From the sequence record NC_061442.1: a stretch of 64,000 nucleotides of DNA; one strand, 5' to 3'. How positions within the stretch are numbered: position 1 is the stretch's first letter; each line of letters starts with the position of its first letter. The notes beneath the pieces were generated by a model. The model was not told the DNA's origin and ran no database searches. It saw nothing but the letters and a program-made list of their open reading frames with translations. Shown here one piece after another: positions 2,039 through 64,000 of this stretch. A program made the translations under genes and the position numbers.

Positions 2039-2677
2039 TTAGTCAGTCGGCTGGCCGAGTTCAGATTCACGCACCTTACGCCACTGGAGCGTACTATCTT
2101 CAAGCACCATTACTTGGTTCACTTGAGGAACCAGCTGGTCTTTGATTGGCACATGTTCTTCACCGTAACTACCATTGATGCTGATCATGGTGGCGGGCTT
2201 CTCAGGATGGGTGTGGTCTAGTGGGTCACGATTGTTGGTAAGTGTTTCATCACCTTCAATCAGGACACGCGACTCGGATTCTGGATATGACAGATAGCCA
2301 ACACCACGAGTGACGCTAGTAGCCAGAGGAGGCAGCGCACGGTTGATGATTTGCAGATCGTTCGGGTCATACGTCTGTTCGGTCATCGCGTCATCGTAGA
2401 AATACAACGCAGTCCAAACATCTTTGTATGGGTCCGAGTTATCTTTCGCAGTACGCTTGAAGGCTGTACCGAAAGTAGACGACTCAGGGTTGTAGTCAAT
2501 CCAAATCGCATTGATTGGAAGGACCACGAAACGCGGAACTGCATACGAGCAGTAGAACAACAGACCTAACTGAGAGCCTTCCAGTGGAAGACGAAACATG
2601 ATCGGGTTTTTGTTCTGCTGGTGGATATTCGTAAGCAACTCAACGTTACTGATGAACTGTTCAAGTTTCAGTTCCAT
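2039..2677 (-). CDS. Virion protein, paralog of flanking genes
   Basis: 212 aa; LPINAIWID...VW...QTYDPND...ATSVTRGVGYL...RDPLDHTHPEKP; SD GGAG upstream. Confidence 0.6.
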   Translation of the reverse strand: MELKLEQFISNVELLTNIHQQNKNPIMFRLPLEGSQLGLLFYCSYAVPRFVVLPINAIWIDYNPESSTFGTAFKRTAKDNSDPYKDVWTALYFYDDAMTEQTYDPNDLQIINRALPPLATSVTRGVGYLSYPESESRVLIEGDETLTNNRDPLDHTHPEKPATMISINGSYGEEHVPIKDQLVPQVNQVMVLEDSTLQWRKVRESELGQPTD

Positions 2678-8400: not shown

Positions 8401-8769
8401 TTACATCAGAGCCAGTTCAGGGTCGATATACGTGTATTGCCACACGATATTCCAACCTGAGGCGGCGTCTCTGTTCGGGTGAATGCGATAGCCGTAGATC
8501 ATCAGCTTGCCCTTAGTGTCAGGTTCAAGCGTAGGCTCATACTCCAGCCATGCTGCTTCGAGCTTCAACTTATCGGCGATATCTTTCGCCCAACCATCGA
8601 AGTCGTAGTCTTCTGGTACTTCCCAAGACAGAGAATGCTTGCGCCAGTGTTCAGCCTGCATGTCAGTGTCTTTGGAGATCCAGTCAAGATGTTCTACGCC
8701 CATATGGTAGGCAATGGAGTGTGCATATCCATGCTCATTCATGTGGCGCTGTAACTGATCAAGACGCAT
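8401..8769 (-). CDS. Hypothetical protein
   Basis: Likely start ATG 8769 (MRLDQLQRH, SD AAGGAG) rather than 8940, which overlaps the upstream gene. Confidence 0.65.
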   Translation of the reverse strand: MRLDQLQRHMNEHGYAHSIAYHMGVEHLDWISKDTDMQAEHWRKHSLSWEVPEDYDFDGWAKDIADKLKLEAAWLEYEPTLEPDTKGKLMIYGYRIHPNRDAASGWNIVWQYTYIDPELALM

Positions 8770-9079
8770 TAGGTTGCTCCTTAAAGCGTGGGAATACGGT
8801 AACGCTAATGCGCGTAGAACCTTTCTCATACTCACGCTCACTATGAGACACAAGCAGGACGTCGGTGACCTCCAAAGTATCTCTAATGAGAATGAGCAAC
8901 TGCCCAACAACGGACAGTGGATGGATATAGTTGGAGACAATCATATTGATCTCTGTTACCTGATCAGGATTGCCTACAGCACCATTTCCATCCCATTCTT
9001 CTACGCTCATACACGCTCGGGCTGCTTCACTCTTTAGCAGGTCCATCTCCAGAGTGAAGGGTAAACGCTCTTTCATCAT
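8759..9079 (-). CDS. Hypothetical protein
   Basis: 106 aa, SD AAGGAG. Confidence 0.65.
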   Translation of the reverse strand: MMKERLPFTLEMDLLKSEAARACMSVEEWDGNGAVGNPDQVTEINMIVSNYIHPLSVVGQLLILIRDTLEVTDVLLVSHSEREYEKGSTRISVTVFPRFKEQPNAS

Positions 9080-9118
9080 AAACTCCTTATAGCCTGTTGA
9101 AAAGAGACAGACTATAAA

Positions 9119-31602: not shown

Positions 31603-31609
31603 AAATTAG
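31603..31609 (-). promoter_or_regulatory. Late-type promoter motif CTAATTT
   Basis: Intergenic after terminator, 39 nt upstream of start. Confidence 0.55.
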
Positions 31610-47381: not shown

Positions 47382-47417
47382 ATTGTCTTCCAGAGCTGTA
47401 TGATTAATTGTGTTATA

Positions 47418-47424
47418 AAATTAG
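47418..47424 (-). promoter_or_regulatory. Late-type promoter motif CTAATTT
   Basis: After terminator, 37 nt upstream of start. Confidence 0.55.
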
Positions 47425-47448
47425 TGTTTGATCAGACAATTCTGAAAC

Positions 47449-47480
47449 AAAAATGGGCGGCACAAAGGCCACCCATTTTT
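47449..47480 (-). terminator. Intrinsic terminator
   Basis: AAAAAUGGGUGGCC...GCCGCCCAUUUUU stem after clamp-loader stop. Confidence 0.75.
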
Positions 47481-47487
47481 CACTTAT

Positions 47488-48771
47488 TTACTTCTTCTTC
47501 TTTTTCTTTTTCGCAGGCTTGTCGTCTTCGTCGTCTTCGCCCATCTTGACTGACAGCTTACCTTCATAGATATCCGCCATGAGAGTAAGCACTTTGGATT
47601 CCAACATAATGTCTGCTGGTACGGACGTTGAGTTGAAAGCTACTTCGGCATCAGCCAGTGAGGATTGCAGATAGACCATGCTAACCAGATTGACTTTGAT
47701 GTTGTCTTTCTTGGTCATGTTCATGAACATCTTGAGGCCAGCCGACTGCCACTTATTCGTTTCGGCATAATGACCTAACACGCCGTGAATAATCCAACGA
47801 GCTTTCGCAACGATTGCACGTGGGTTGTTCGCTTCACGCAGGAACTGAATTACTGCAATCAGGTCCATAGACAGATACGCACCAATCATCTGGACAGCTT
47901 TCGCTTCCATGTCGATTTCTGGATCTGCTGCTGCTAGTTCGGCAACTAGGTTCTTATCGAACTCCTCACCACCTTTGACCGACGCATAGATGTTCTGCAA
48001 CATCGTGATTGCACCACGCATCTGGCCACCAGCATACTCAGCTACCTGATGAAGTGCCGACGTAGCTTTATCTAGAGCTTTGTCTTTCTTCGGCAGTATG
48101 GAGAGTTGCTCACTAATCTCGACCAAACGCTTATGAATAACATCGGTCGGGATAGGTCTGATAGGCAGTTGCGTCATGCGACTGATCATCGTGTTCTTCA
48201 TCTTCTCAGGGTTCGTTGTTACGAAGATGAATACAACGTGAGCTGGTGGTTGCTCGGTGATTTTCAACAGCTTGGATTCTGCCGCGCTGGACATTAAGTG
48301 GGATTCATCGAAGATGAACACACGGCGTTTGAACATCGGACTCAGAGGTGCGCTGTCCACAATCTTCTGGCTGCCGTCCACTTTACCTGCATCGCCACCC
48401 ATGTCGAACTCTTGCTCGTCAGGGTGTGCACCACGGTCGTGCATCTCACACGAACGACACTTACCGCAGGCGCTGAATGTTTCGCAGTTGATATACTTCG
48501 CCACCAGACGAGCGAACGTTGTCTTACCAGAACCGAGATGACCTGTGATGATCATCGTTGATGGAACTGTCTTCGACTTCTGCCAGCCTTTCATGATCTT
48601 AACTATGTGGTTTTGTCCCACATAGTCTTCGATACGCTTCGGTCTAAACTGATCAGCAAAGTTAATCGTGGTCAGTTCACCAGACTCGGAAGAATCGCCT
48701 TTCTTTTTCTTCGACGGCTTACCCTCGTCAAAGCTACGCGACTTCTTCTTTTTCTTTTCTTCTTTAGCCAT
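47488..48771 (-). CDS. dnaX: Clamp loader, DNA polymerase III gamma/tau-like
   Basis: FRPKRIEDYVGQ, GHLGSGKTTFAR, INC..ACGKCRSC zinc module, IFDESH, LLKITEQPP, FIFVTT, TMISR; poly-Lys termini. Confidence 0.9.
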   Translation of the reverse strand: MAKEEKKKKKSRSFDEGKPSKKKKGDSSESGELTTINFADQFRPKRIEDYVGQNHIVKIMKGWQKSKTVPSTMIITGHLGSGKTTFARLVAKYINCETFSACGKCRSCEMHDRGAHPDEQEFDMGGDAGKVDGSQKIVDSAPLSPMFKRRVFIFDESHLMSSAAESKLLKITEQPPAHVVFIFVTTNPEKMKNTMISRMTQLPIRPIPTDVIHKRLVEISEQLSILPKKDKALDKATSALHQVAEYAGGQMRGAITMLQNIYASVKGGEEFDKNLVAELAAADPEIDMEAKAVQMIGAYLSMDLIAVIQFLREANNPRAIVAKARWIIHGVLGHYAETNKWQSAGLKMFMNMTKKDNIKVNLVSMVYLQSSLADAEVAFNSTSVPADIMLESKVLTLMADIYEGKLSVKMGEDDEDDKPAKKKKKKK

Positions 48772-48917: not shown

Positions 48918-49115
48918 TTAGGCAAAGCTCAACTCCCAACGTGGAACCACGCGGAAGAATTGCTTAAAGTGGGACGGTGGGTTATTCTTGATTGATTCAA
49001 GTTTCTTTTCCACTACGTCATAATCTTTTATGCCACTCTCGACTGTATGAGTGGTGAACGTACCGTCAGCCTGAATCAAGTCGGCGACAACACGGTAGCT
49101 TGGTTTTCTCAGCAT
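48918..49115 (-). CDS. Small hypothetical protein
   Basis: 65 aa, SD AGGAG; variant promoter CTGTAAACA at 49155-49163. Confidence 0.65.
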   Translation of the reverse strand: MLRKPSYRVVADLIQADGTFTTHTVESGIKDYDVVEKKLESIKNNPPSHFKQFFRVVPRWELSFA

Positions 49116-49184
49116 CTATTCTCCTGAAAACGAAATTCTTATTGCTCTGAATTATGTTTACAGATTACTGGAGTAGTCATAAAA

Positions 49185-49545
49185 GAATAAAGTAAGACAA
49201 ATCTTAAACTCCAATAGGGACTCGTTAGAAATCCTATTGGAGTTCACCCTCAGTGCGATGACGGTCGCCCGAAGGTGTTCTCCCCGTGTCTTTCAAATGC
49301 ACCGACACGGTAGCGCTTGCGGTCTTACGCTCTTGTGTGTGCAGCGCGTCGGCAGCAGGTAGCATTTACGCGCAGCAAAGAGCAGCCGCTTTCGGCCATT
49401 AGCGATAACGCGGTGTTACGCTTAACGGCCTATGTGACTCTGGCCGAGTCTGTACAAAAAAGAGTTCGGCCTATCCCCAATTCGGCAAAAAGAACAGGCC
49501 GAACTAAACATTCAACACACACTCCATGTGCGCTGTTTTGTACTG
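49185..49545 (-). ncRNA. Candidate novel highly structured non-coding RNA (about 360 nt)
   Basis: No credible ORF; about 10 stems, several closed only through minus-strand G-U pairs; 7-bp long-range pairing 49192-98/49322-28; CTAATTT promoter motif at 49550-56. Ends approximate. Confidence 0.7.
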
Positions 49546-49549
49546 TTAC

Positions 49550-49556
49550 AAATTAG
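49550..49556 (-). promoter_or_regulatory. Late-type promoter motif CTAATTT upstream of candidate ncRNA
   Basis: 28 nt past the HAD gene stop, with no ORF following. Confidence 0.55.
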
Positions 49557-49583
49557 AAACATGTTGAAATAATCAGACAATTC

Positions 49584-50171
49584 TTAGTTGAGCATCGGAA
49601 GAAGATTTTCTAAGAAATGCTGGCGATCAAATGAACTAATTCGGTGAGGATGTTTGATGTGCAGGTTCCACGCCTTGTCAAACAGCAACACGTTCTTTGG
49701 TAGGACTACGTTAACACCAACACGCGTGAAGGAATCACGAACGGCCGTAACTGGATTGTCGTCAACAAGAATCCAAGTACCTTCACCGTAAGTCGCATTC
49801 AGAAAAGCAACCTTGTCAGGATGCTCAACGCTGTTTAAGCAGTGAACATGATCGAACAATGACAGGTGCTTCTCCAGAGACTTGCGCGTGTAGCGTTCAC
49901 CTTTTTCGTGGTAACCGCGATGCGTACAGATACCAGCACTGAATCCATCACGAACCAACATCGCAACTGTCTGGATGAAGTACGGACGCATGTTCGCATT
50001 CAACATGAACGTACCTTCGGCAAGCATGTCAATAAAAGGCTGCTTACCGTTCTCGGGTGTAATAAAGGTGTCAGTGCCTGGGTAGATTCCGTAATTCATA
50101 AGATGACACAGCATGAAGTTATGCGTATCAAATGCCGTGTCGTCCATGTCGAAGAAAATATGTTTGATCAT
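49584..50171 (-). CDS. HAD-superfamily nucleotidase (5'(3')-deoxyribonucleotidase-like)
   Basis: IFFDMDDT (motif I), ICTHR (II), DK (III), ILVDDN (IV). Confidence 0.82.
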   Translation of the reverse strand: MIKHIFFDMDDTAFDTHNFMLCHLMNYGIYPGTDTFITPENGKQPFIDMLAEGTFMLNANMRPYFIQTVAMLVRDGFSAGICTHRGYHEKGERYTRKSLEKHLSLFDHVHCLNSVEHPDKVAFLNATYGEGTWILVDDNPVTAVRDSFTRVGVNVVLPKNVLLFDKAWNLHIKHPHRISSFDRQHFLENLLPMLN

Positions 50172-52613: not shown

Positions 52614-52826
52614 TCATTTCTCAGGAGTAGGGGTAAAGGGGCTGTGAACAAACGGGTTTGTCTTATTGACATACAGGAACCCGAATGCGTTTTGTTTGTA
52701 ACTCTGACGCGCGGCCGATTGCTTTTGTTTAGCTTCGGCGTGTTGTGCGTCCTGCTCGTCAAAGATACCTCGACGATGGAACTTAAAATCAGGGTGTACT
52801 GAAATATCTTTGACGATAGCAGTCAT
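52614..52826 (-). CDS. Small hypothetical protein
   Basis: 70 aa, ATGA-coupled to the TnpB-like gene stop. Confidence 0.5.
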   Translation of the reverse strand: MTAIVKDISVHPDFKFHRRGIFDEQDAQHAEAKQKQSAARQSYKQNAFGFLYVNKTNPFVHSPFTPTPEK

Positions 52827-53854
52827 TTTTTATATTGTCCTGTAACTGTATATACCAGGGTTTTCTTGGAGACGCGAGCATTGACTATCAGATACTTAAA
52901 CTCTTTCGTCAAGTCAAGCTCACCAGACGTAACGCCAATGATCGGAATGTTCTTGATCTCACCAAACGTGAGTGTCGTTCCCATGTCATTAATGGAATAC
53001 GAAGACGAAAGTGAAACACTGTTCAGTGACTTCTTGGAAATCATTGAAGGGTGTTTACCGTGTTGGCGTTTTGCATCCAACCACTTCTGCCAATCACTCA
53101 TTGCGTGGTGCATCGAACGTTTGATCAGCGAACGAGGAATATCTCCTTCGTACTGCTTGCGAAACTCCGTGATGACTTTCGAGTCAGGTGCACCTGCAGT
53201 AACGCGACGTTTGTCCTTAAGCGCTTTCTTCAAATGCTCTGACCAATAGTTGTATGCTTCGACACGGATTTTTAAATAGTCTTCCATGTCGGCTGCCTGT
53301 GCTAGGCTACATTCAATTTCAAATGTCACCAACTTACCCCGATAGCTTGGCGTGTCGGCGGCGTGTCGCTCTGCTTGTTTTGCAGCGCGTGTTTCGGCAA
53401 TCAATTTCTCCTTCAGGCACGCCGCCCATGAGTAAGCAAACGTCAAACGCAAATCAGCACCGTGCGTCATCAGGTCAGGACAGAATTGAAGAATCAACGG
53501 AATTGCGTAACCTAGATTACACTTGCGTTCGATAAACGCAGACTTGAGATCGTCTGGGCTGAGTTTACCCGCGCCTAAATCTGCGAACAATTTACGCGTC
53601 TGTTTGAACGATTCGGAAATGTGCGAGCTATCATAGATAACATCATCCATTGATATGCCAGACTCTACAACTTTGGCATATGCTTCTTCAATCGTAACAT
53701 CAGGCCACGTCCTGTACCCAACGTCCGCCAGCAAAAGATTTCGATGACAGTAAAGCTCATACATGTGCAAAAAGTCTGCGACAGGCAGACTCTCTGGGTA
53801 TACGAATTGTTGGGATACTTTCTTTGGCGTGATACTAGCTTTCTTCTTAATCAT
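52823..53854 (-). CDS. TnpB-derived protein: unknown N-terminal domain + TnpB-like WED/REC lobe, no RuvC
   Basis: Residues about 174-343 align by eye with the IS200/IS605 TnpB N-terminal half ([50 protein letters not shown]); the ORF stops just before RuvC-I. Confidence 0.6.
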   Translation of the reverse strand: [343 protein letters not shown]

Positions 53855-63374: not shown

Positions 63375-64000
63375 TGACACGCGCAATCTGTCTCGCATCG
63401 GTAAAATGATTGACGCTGCTCTTGACGTAAAGAACCAAGAGAAGCGTTGGCCGAAGAAGCGAGTCAGTCCATCTATGTTCCCTATCTGCCCTATTCAAGA
63501 GGCAGCCAAACTTATTTACCAGAAGCATAACAACTGCATGACCGGTGAGTCAGGTACGTTGCTGAACATCTTTGCGAAAGCAGGGACCGGGATGCACGAA
63601 TCATTGCAGAATGCTTTGGGTCATAGTGGTCAGATGGTTGGTCACTGGAAATGTACGAACGATAAATGCGTTGAGTTCCCAAAGACTAAAGGTAAGATGG
63701 TCGATGGTGAGTACGTCAAAGGCAAATACACGCGAACTCGAAGCACGAACAATCGTTGTCCATCGTGCGATAAACCCATGGCTTACGCAGAACTCAAAGT
63801 CCTGTACAAGTCACTCAAGGGATATGTCGATGGCCTGATTGATAATCTGGACGGTACGTACAGCCTGATAGATTTGAAATCGACTATGGTGACCAAAGCT
63901 GCTGATGGATCTTTCTTCGTTAAGTATCACCGCTTCCAGATTGCGACATACGCATACCTGCTGAAAAAGCGTTACGGCTATAACATCGTTGATTATACTC
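63340..64000 (+). CDS. PD-(D/E)XK (RecB/Cas4-like) exonuclease, 3' end beyond window
   Basis: Not in ORF track. ATG 63340 (SD GAGGA); hand translation gives VSPSMFPIC, GTGMHE, CTNDKC..CPSC, AE..GYVDG, IDLKS, QIATYAYLL. Confidence 0.8.
   Translation, partial: MRTLANIPARANDTRNLSRIGKMIDAALDVKNQEKRWPKKRVSPSMFPICPIQEAAKLIYQKHNNCMTGESGTLLNIFAKAGTGMHESLQNALGHSGQMVGHWKCTNDKCVEFPKTKGKMVDGEYVKGKYTRTRSTNNRCPSCDKPMAYAELKVLYKSLKGYVDGLIDNLDGTYSLIDLKSTMVTKAADGSFFVKYHRFQIATYAYLLKKRYGYNIVDYT

Follow-up and report, generated by a model that had tools for sequence, protein, structure and literature searches.

The OMEGA RNAs of TnpB and IscB (reRNA, HEARO) are encoded at or overlapping the 3′ end of the nuclease gene (TnpB) or on its 5′ side (IscB), inside a transposon end, and the pRNA of phage phi29 acts in trans as part of a protein machine. 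Here we describe a structured RNA that resembles these and other systems in part. It lies in a 64,000-nt stretch of sequence record NC_061442.1 (hereafter the window), which comes from Erwinia phage pEa_SNUABM_35 (Alexandravirus, 261.7 kb, MZ443788; window coordinates equal record coordinates minus 124000). The RNA body, 337 nt on the minus strand (49207-49543), comprises ten helices, P1 to P10, with a folding z of −8.7 to −9.0 and covariation in all three of its domains. We regard its fold, strand specificity, conservation, non-coding nature and distribution as established, and this RNA gene very probably belongs to an undescribed family of structured phage RNA.

Each of the closest described systems shares some of its features. 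Like the OMEGA RNAs, it is a structured scaffold with a pseudoknot and has a protein of TnpB-like fold encoded in the same genome, but it neither overlaps nor abuts the gene for that protein, has no guide segment and gives no covariance-model match. GOLLD, ROOL and HEARO, as first described, are likewise hundreds of nucleotides long with many helices and pseudoknots, came from comparative discovery in phage DNA and were stand-alone genes whose function was unassigned when they were discovered; the RNA described here differs in being smaller (215-470 nt), in not lying beside tRNA genes, in having no sequence or structure match to them in Rfam 15 and in being confined to one clade of Enterobacterales jumbo phages, at a fixed syntenic position. 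Transcriptional riboswitches and attenuators offer a parallel in layout, namely a pseudoknotted core with an invariant junction followed by two exclusive, jointly covarying helices, one of them a hairpin and then U-rich sequence. However, the phage RNA is much larger, has its own promoter-like motif and, in the type found in Dickeya JA phages, its own terminator, and the downstream genes have a promoter motif of their own; no ligand or regulated gene is evident for it. With phi29-like pRNA the analogy would be one of role only, that of a phage-encoded, stand-alone structured RNA, here with a promoter-like class shared with structural and lysis operons, and no lineage-conserved intermolecular loop-loop complementarity was seen by eye.

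Searches for known RNA families agree with this picture. Rfam 15, which the preliminary description of the locus had named as a check and whose families cover RNase P, tmRNA, group I and II introns, 6S, GOLLD, ROOL, riboswitches and ribozymes, gave zero matches across the window at gathering thresholds. When the cutoff was relaxed to E <= 10, the 1-kb region yielded chance-level matches only, and seven homologous loci yielded none with a cutoff of E <= 1. That description, made from the sequence alone, had reported no signatures of tmRNA, RNase P or introns, and indeed neither Rfam nor ARAGORN (which found no tRNA or tmRNA) gave a match. Our literature searches found no description of this RNA, and a large survey of candidate structured viral RNAs contains motifs of 29-151 nt only (PMC10690425). 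A self-splicing intron was rejected, as the upstream HAD-type phosphatase gene encodes 191-202 aa and has its own stop codon in all related phages examined, whatever the size of the RNA; the downstream gene also carries its own promoter motif. A CsrB-like sponge was rejected as well, the five GGA motifs in the RNA being about the number expected by chance.

A conserved minus-strand fold in a clade of jumbo phages

The minus strand folds with an energy of −153 kcal/mol and z = −8.7, against z = −3.5 for the plus strand. Forty minus-strand control segments of 359 nt taken across the window gave z = −1.13 ± 1.43 with a minimum of −5.06, compared with −9.0 for the target, which makes the RNA locus the strongest outlier among the 41 segments tested. 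The second-best background fold, at 8750-9108 on the minus strand (z = −5.06), overlaps the gap at 9038-9118 and a lone plus-strand open reading frame at 8843-9037. All ten helices proposed in the preliminary description were recovered in place, and its argument that the G-U pairs assign the RNA to the minus strand holds, with numerous such pairs (e.g., 3′-core alignment columns 131-172 and 146-156) fitting that strand only.

It had also seen no credible open reading frame, and none is conserved in the homologues: the longest reading frames of 22 of them all differ in place, strand and frame. Insertions and deletions among the homologues are nearly all of 1-2 nt, and variable columns are distributed 63/57/57 by position modulo 3, without 3-base periodicity. 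A small protein-coding gene is ruled out by this lack of a conserved frame, by indels that are not multiples of three and by the lack of third-position bias. Nucleotide identity in the RNA is 70-90%, as compared with 55-81% in the upstream gene (the RNA being higher in six of six comparisons), and is near the 63-91% of the downstream gene. Purifying selection on the RNA is roughly equal in strength to that on the adjacent genes.

The preliminary description had proposed that homologues be collected and examined for compensatory changes, and such changes were found in all three domains. We built a covariance model for each domain, realigned the homologues with Infernal and counted paired alignment cells and compensatory pairs. 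In the 5′ domain (P2 and P3), 98.5% of cells are paired and 14 of 20 pairs show compensatory changes, with slid controls at 26-46% paired; the central domain (P4-P6) has 97.8% of cells paired and 11 of 34 pairs compensatory (controls 28-38%), and the 3′ core (S1, P9 and P10) has 94.8% and 16 of 28 (controls 23-49%). Taken together, 41 of 82 pairs carry compensatory changes and 95-98% of cells are paired, figures that lean high because the clades are few and the alignments were fitted to the models. None of 500 shuffles reached the observed covariation score in any domain. A MAFFT alignment, which is blind to structure, gave 89 pairs with RNAalifold, 27 of them compensatory, and because the domain models agree both with this result and with independent single-sequence folds of every lineage, we consider the fold secure. 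Covariation supports P2, P3, P6 (with its P6/P7 domain), the pseudoknot containing P8, P9 and the distal part of P10 well, whereas P1, P4 and the base of P10 show no variation at all and P5 almost none. P1 was kept outside the 5′-domain model (R2) because variation in the length of a U run misaligns its 3′ strand.

About 55 phage records, together with a few metagenomic contigs, contain the RNA; they belong to at least seven groups (Alexandra-, Sasquatch-, Snu-, Yoloswag-, Rivs- and Salmondvirus and Yersinia phage fHe-Yen9-02), and none of them bears an RNA annotation. The region was found by blastn in 46 phage records (Alexandravirus, Sasquatchvirus (Y3) and Snuvirus), where it is unannotated; a sequence profile revealed a longer version in Yoloswag, pEa_SNUABM_5 and one metagenomic contig, where it reaches about 470 nt, and pattern scans a shorter one, which measures about 215 nt as far as the end of P10, in metagenomic contigs and the Dickeya phages JA11, JA13 and JA29. 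Overall length is thus about 340 nt in pEa_SNUABM_35, 215-290 nt in the Dickeya JA type and 470 nt in the Yoloswag type. All of these relatives are recovered, at 55-159 bits, by a covariance model of the 3′ core (R1), which adds fHe-Yen9-02 (35 bits, E = 3e-8). It also gives a weak match in phage NCTB (locus 2483-2616, minus strand; 29.5 bits), which is a lead only and does not lie beside a clamp loader gene. The NCTB match has a P10-like hairpin whose stem, invariant elsewhere, carries the compensatory change ACUUCAA/UUGAAGU and whose apical loop is almost identical; it is a possible distant homologue from a marine phage. No match was found in Lu11 and PaBG, in which only the loci around the clamp loader were searched.

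Beyond cultured phages, the metagenome scan added only contigs of this same clade. A scan of IMG/VR with a pattern containing GGGGAG gave many chance matches, and a tighter pattern returned true members only. Among 185,579 bacterial and archaeal species genomes (one per species), a pattern scan gave 21 matches, of which none fitted the RNA sequence profile at E <= 0.01, so that no cellular or prophage copy was found with the pattern used. Small coding sequences have been annotated over the RNA in three phages, namely Yoloswag (gp204, locus 1240-1404), pEa_SNUABM_5 (pEaSNUABM5_00214, 1231-1356) and fHe-Yen9-02 (fHeYen902_106c, 1767-1973); these are probably spurious, as they are not kept between lineages.

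Lineage-specific outer domains and a universal 3′ core

What all lineages share is the 3′ core, which consists of a UAAGAC segment, an H-type pseudoknot, a G-rich GGGGAG strand, P9 and a P10 hairpin with a sequence-invariant base. The 5′ and central domains (P1-P6) are lineage-specific outer parts around it. All features of the RNA described in this section lie on the minus strand.

The pseudoknot (49284-49316) was missed by the preliminary description, whose P8 is the pseudoknot stem S2 (49304-49310/49284-49290); the second stem, S1 (49312-49316/49299-49303), straddles the 5′ strand of S2. The pseudoknot is found at the same place in 24 of 24 sequences, with eight sequence variants of S1 and seven of S2; four of the five S1 pairs show compensatory changes, and the pseudoknot score was reached by 0-9 of 200 shuffles per sequence. 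The preliminary description had instead proposed a pseudoknot between GUAAGAC in the P6 internal loop and GUCUUAC in the 3′ tail, and this did not survive comparison. Among 31 distinct sequences just 3 allow perfect pairing; GUCUGAC, found in most Alexandraviruses, produces an uncompensated A-G mismatch, and the tail bearing GUCUUAC is absent from the Yoloswag, JA and Yen9-02 types. The UAAGAC itself (49322-49327), single-stranded on the 3′ side of the P6 closing helix, is invariant in 24 sequences from five lineages, and fHe-Yen9-02 alone deviates.

Directly 3′ of S2 is the nearly invariant segment GGGGAGAA (49278-49285), termed X1, which is able to pair with the ACUCC of P10. The P9 hairpin follows (49245-49277; 7 of 9 pairs compensatory), and its loop GACCGUCAUC (49257-49266) shows no variation among the Alexandra, Y3 and SNU7 types. 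In Yoloswag-type RNAs, the P9-loop motif ACCGUCAU is found instead on a hairpin upstream of P6 (approximately at locus 1310-1330 in Yoloswag and 1270-1290 in pEa_SNUABM_5, and also in metagenomic contig mgL066), which would make it a conserved loop sequence relocated within the fold between Alexandra-type and Yoloswag-type RNAs. The long terminal hairpin P10 (49207-49244) has 99.5% of its cells paired, with 5 of 14 pairs compensatory and 7 never varying. The invariant pairs form its 7-bp base, ACUCCAA/UUGGAGU, and the distal part covaries.

The arrangement of X1 (GGAG..., after S2), X′ (...ACUCC, in the 5′ strand of P10) and X2 (GGAGU..., in the 3′ strand of P10) permits two mutually exclusive helices. 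Pairing of X1 with X′ comprises 4 bp, an internal loop and P9 in the Alexandra, Y3, SNU7 and Yoloswag types and a continuous helix of 10-12 bp in the JA type and fHe-Yen9-02, and X1, X′ and X2 vary jointly between lineages. When each fold was forced in seven lineages, the energies were −26 to −33 versus −34 to −39 kcal/mol, such that both are stable and the full P10 is favored by 5-9 kcal/mol. The alternative pairing of P9 and P10 looks like a conserved conformational switch in these sequences. A third invariant GGAGU is located in the loop of P2. P10 is followed by a U-rich 3′ tail (49185-49206, UUUAAGAUUUGUCUUAC...), whose conservation is limited to the Alexandra, Y3 and SNU7 types. This tail may be part of the next gene's promoter region and lie outside the RNA, the 3′ end of which is only approximate.

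The 5′ domain (49452-49543) is formed by P1 (49536-49543/49452-49459) closing P2 and P3. P1 (GUACAAAA/UUUUGUAC) is present in the pEa_SNUABM_35 fold and invariant, and because it never varies, covariation is uninformative about it. The P2 hairpin (49513-49535) has 97.9% of cells paired and 4 of 7 pairs compensatory, and the GGAGU of its loop occupies alignment positions G59-T63. The long P3 hairpin (49463-49505; 98.8% paired, 10 of 13 pairs compensatory) is followed by a U run (49456-49461), and together they look like an intrinsic terminator inside the RNA, resembling others in this genome. The run is 6-12 bases long and its length varies even among otherwise close phages (alignment columns 133-144), which makes it a length-polymorphic homopolymer within the RNA. 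An alternative helix, read by eye in the Yoloswag and Yen9-02 types, joins the bases after the U run to bases upstream of P3; in each lineage these bases can pair upstream, as P1 in pEa_SNUABM_35 and in other registers in the other two. A short 90-nt product ending at the U run is possible, but the covarying structure extends past P3 and the bases after the run pair upstream, which argues that read-through molecules are the conserved product. For the same reason we rejected a mere intrinsic terminator or 3′ untranslated region, with which P3 and the U run are compatible, as 245 nt with covarying helices come after.

The central domain begins with the small hairpin P4 (49436-49450, GACUC/GAGUC), which is present but uninformative, none of its five pairs varying. 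The bulged hairpin P5 (49394-49430) is 96-100% paired with one compensatory pair, and its loop GUAACACCGCGU (49408-49419) is invariant. Phage pEp_SNUABM_52 carries a 10-nt tandem duplication of this loop motif (GUAACACCGC, alignment columns 185-194) relative to the near-identical Y3. Complements of the invariant P5 and P9 loops, sought in the window as antisense targets, occurred at chance level. The P6 domain (49319-49389), named P6/P7 in the preliminary description, consists of a closing helix, GCGG/CCGC, and two inner helices; 10 of its 18 pairs are compensatory, and its apical loop contains an invariant GCUACC (49358-49363).

Genomic setting and transcription signals

On the coding (minus) strand, the RNA occupies a 468-nt gap without annotation (49116-49583). 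Upstream is gp208 (49584-50171, minus), the HAD-type phosphatase gene, in which the characteristic positions Asp-x-Asp-Asp-Thr, Thr/His, Lys and Asp-Asp are all invariant in an alignment of 20 homologues; its PHROGs match to the polynucleotide-kinase/phosphatase family is weak, and weak matches of the protein to SRP19 (E about 0.1) were judged to be chance. Directly downstream of the gap is a gene of 65 aa (48918-49115, minus), followed by the clamp loader gene (47488-48771, minus). The surrounding 50 kb is a replication block (DNA polymerase, helicase, clamp, primase and SbcCD) with a few interspersed structural and lysis genes. Family and sequence searches of gp214 and other neighboring proteins against Pfam, PHROGs, NCBIfam and PDB mostly gave no match. 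At the end of the window, gp225 (63406-64000, plus) carries the RefSeq label 'CRISPR/Cas system associated' and probably corresponds to the Cas4/RecB-like nuclease that PMC7412058 mentions for these phages; the part of the window inspected for CRISPR arrays showed none.

Reading the intergenic gaps on the coding strand directly revealed two classes of promoter-like motif. The first, class B, is CTAATTT, which lies at 49550-49556 (minus) before the first helix of the RNA. The preliminary description had noted this motif 7 nt before P1; the motif stands, and the distance is in fact 6 nt. It is invariant in the main alignment, is CTAATTA or CTAATTT in the Yoloswag-type and JA-type homologues and is conserved in all types checked save fHe-Yen9-02. 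On the minus strand of the window it occurs 13 times, six of them in intergenic gaps, including those before the endolysin and head-tail connector operons. The earlier designation of a late-type promoter is therefore plausible, the motif being shared with these operons, with the word 'late' resting on the two of them. Class B CTAATTT(TT) sites lie at 31609, 32495, 41438, 47424, 49556 and 57672 (minus strand). Upstream of the motif, right after the stop codon of the preceding gene, is a box, GAATTGTCTGA (49573-49583, minus), with 10 of 11 positions invariant in 22 aligned phages. This box recurs upstream of another CTAATTT motif, at about 47424-47450 in the gap 47382-47487, and we infer that it is a DNA-level promoter-associated element.

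The second class, A, includes CTGTAAACATAAT (49151-49163, minus), which is the promoter-like motif of the next gene (65 aa, then the clamp loader) and marks where the RNA unit is bounded downstream. Class A motifs, CTGTAAA(T)A, precede the DNA polymerase, SbcD, sliding clamp, primase and clamp loader genes and are the same motif as the 'putative middle/late promoter' annotated in phage Lu11. Sites on the minus strand include 17338, 33649, 45948, 48817 and 49163, among others, and motifs of both classes often lie directly after a GC-rich terminator hairpin. Phages of this group reportedly use the host RNA polymerase with phage sigma factors (PMC7412058). A consensus scan for sigma-70 promoters and terminators over 47-51 kb gave chance-level results, and the matches inside the RNA are pieces of P2 and P5/P6. 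In JA13 the order is CTAATTT, the RNA, a canonical GC-rich terminator with nine U, a class A promoter-like motif and the clamp loader, which by its sequence is a self-contained transcription unit. The Alexandra type has no canonical terminator after P10.

Candidate roles and significance

Our leading proposal, which we hold tentatively, is that this is a stand-alone RNA acting in trans as a folded, partner-binding, two-state molecule. It would be read from the minus strand, with a start a few bases after the CTAATTT motif, and would work in trans in its folded form. The invariant nucleotides of the junction, the loops and the P10 base would bind a partner, which could be a phage or host protein or a small ligand, and the molecule would toggle between a state in which GGAG pairs with ACUCC (P9 extended and stacked on the pseudoknot) and one in which ACUCC pairs with the 3′ GGAGU (full P10). 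Around this core, P1-P6 would form a lineage-specific scaffold. Several points weigh against the proposal. The transcript and its ends are predictions from sequence, and P3 with its U run could stop most transcripts at about 90 nt. Because the Alexandra type lacks a terminator after P10, the RNA could be a long cis-acting leader into the 65-aa and clamp loader genes. The P10 base is a perfect DNA palindrome of invariant sequence, and the significance obtained from shuffling is overstated because the sequences fall into few clades. The adjacency of the HAD-type phosphatase gene, the sole constant neighbor, proves little, since the whole region is collinear in these phages.

The main rival, which we consider credible but unlikely, is a cis-acting leader or attenuator in which the alternative pairing and the terminator-like P3 set transcription into the 65-aa and clamp loader genes, starting from CTAATTT or from upstream read-through. 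Antiterminator/terminator pairs usually show the kind of three-way covariation seen in X1, X′ and X2, the pseudoknot with its invariant junction bases is aptamer-like, and P3 with its run of 6-12 U is terminator-like; moreover, a U-rich stretch follows P10, and in the Alexandra type there is no other terminator before the next gene. However, the conserved promoter motif of the downstream genes lies between the RNA and their start, and the JA type has a strong, independent terminator about 30-45 nt past P10, with no U tract on P10 itself. The downstream gene also differs by lineage, the 65-aa gene being absent in JA13, and at 215-470 nt with ten helices the RNA is far above the size of known expression platforms.

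The invariant single-stranded UAAGAC and GGGGAG on either side of the conserved pseudoknot raise the question of whether the core could be the active site of a self-processing or catalytic RNA. Small ribozymes are common in phage genomes. We think this improbable, as the only Rfam ribozyme match is a chance-level one to RAGATH-13 (16 bits against a gathering score of 80) and no mobility or repeated copies were seen. Slightly more doubtful still is a replication-origin or primer transcript, in which a persistent hybrid with the template would prime DNA synthesis. The location of the RNA among the genes for helicase, DNA polymerase, clamp, clamp loader, primase and SbcCD, and the G-rich strand adjoining a conserved structure, would suit such a role, but the cumulative GC skew does not turn near 49 kb, no repeats (Tandem Repeats Finder), iterons or AT-rich unwinding stretch were found, and the promoter-like motif is of the lysis/structural-operon class and not of the class preceding replication genes.

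The preliminary description had, as a hypothesis, paired the RNA with gp214 (343 aa; 52823-53854, minus), a gene that it called TnpB-like and lacking RuvC, as an OMEGA-type guide RNA. Its view of the protein is borne out at the level of the fold. Although gp214 has no sequence match in Pfam, PHROGs, NCBIfam or PDB, an AlphaFold model (12 sequences, pLDDT 80.6) has ISDra2 TnpB as its best match (E = 2.6e-4), with a TM score of 0.70 to 8ex9_A, a TnpB chain with only the non-RuvC part resolved; the model also matches ISFba1 TnpB, Cas12f, Cas12k and Fanzor2, and RuvC is apparently missing. This TnpB/Cas12-like predicted fold favors the pairing, but the distribution of the two genes largely refutes it, and we consider a guide RNA working with gp214 very improbable. 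Homologues of gp214 are found in 22 phage records, compared with about 55 for the RNA; Alexandra, SNUABM_2, AD1, Y3 and many others have the RNA at 70-91% identity and no gp214, and in Alexandra, SNUABM_2 and the metagenomic contigs mg054 and mg055 the gp214 slot holds unrelated open reading frames, with no homologue detected by tblastn or hidden Markov model. Nor is the RNA at the 3′ end of gp214, from which it lies 3.3 kb downstream, with five genes (gp213-gp209) and then the HAD gene between them and no transposon ends seen. The 5′ leader is only about 6 nt, and among the Alexandra, Y3 and SNU7 types the 3′ tail shows conservation; because conservation and not variability characterizes the flanks of the fold, there is no guide segment. 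The presence of gp214 is patchy among near-identical phages (pEp_SNUABM_52 has it and Y3 does not; SNUABM_28 has it and SNUABM_22 does not), which suggests an accessory or formerly mobile gene.

Finally, a DNA-level element, either an array of single-stranded DNA hairpins or a palindromic protein-binding site, is the least probable reading: the invariant palindrome at the P10 base and the tolerance of G-T wobbles in single-stranded DNA speak for it, but ten helices and a pseudoknot covary, well beyond a single palindrome, the sequence separating the two P10 half-sites differs in length and itself covaries as a stem, and the element is bracketed by promoter- and terminator-like signals.

Returning to the trans-acting, two-state RNA that we favor, we speculate on a more specific form of it, which we regard as rather unlikely at present, that the RNA is a subunit of a new jumbo-phage ribonucleoprotein or RNA machine, made together with the late genes and switching between its two folds upon partner binding. 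Such a machine could have a part in packaging or virion assembly, in counter-defence, or in a takeover of host translation by way of the three exposed GGAG motifs. To our knowledge, few non-coding RNAs are large and intricately folded, and nearly all the classes studied have proved fundamental, whether in catalysis, in scaffolding of ribonucleoproteins or in ligand sensing. The RNA described here combines a well-supported fold of ten helices, a pseudoknot and an apparent two-state switch. Because it is present in cultured phages of tractable, plant-associated hosts (Erwinia, Dickeya and Yersinia), transcript mapping, probing and structure determination are feasible. Regardless of its role, its recognition puts right the annotation of about 55 phage genomes, in some of which small and probably spurious coding sequences lie on the RNA, and if the RNA is indeed part of a ribonucleoprotein or RNA machine, it would represent a new functional class of phage RNA and not a regulator of its neighbors.

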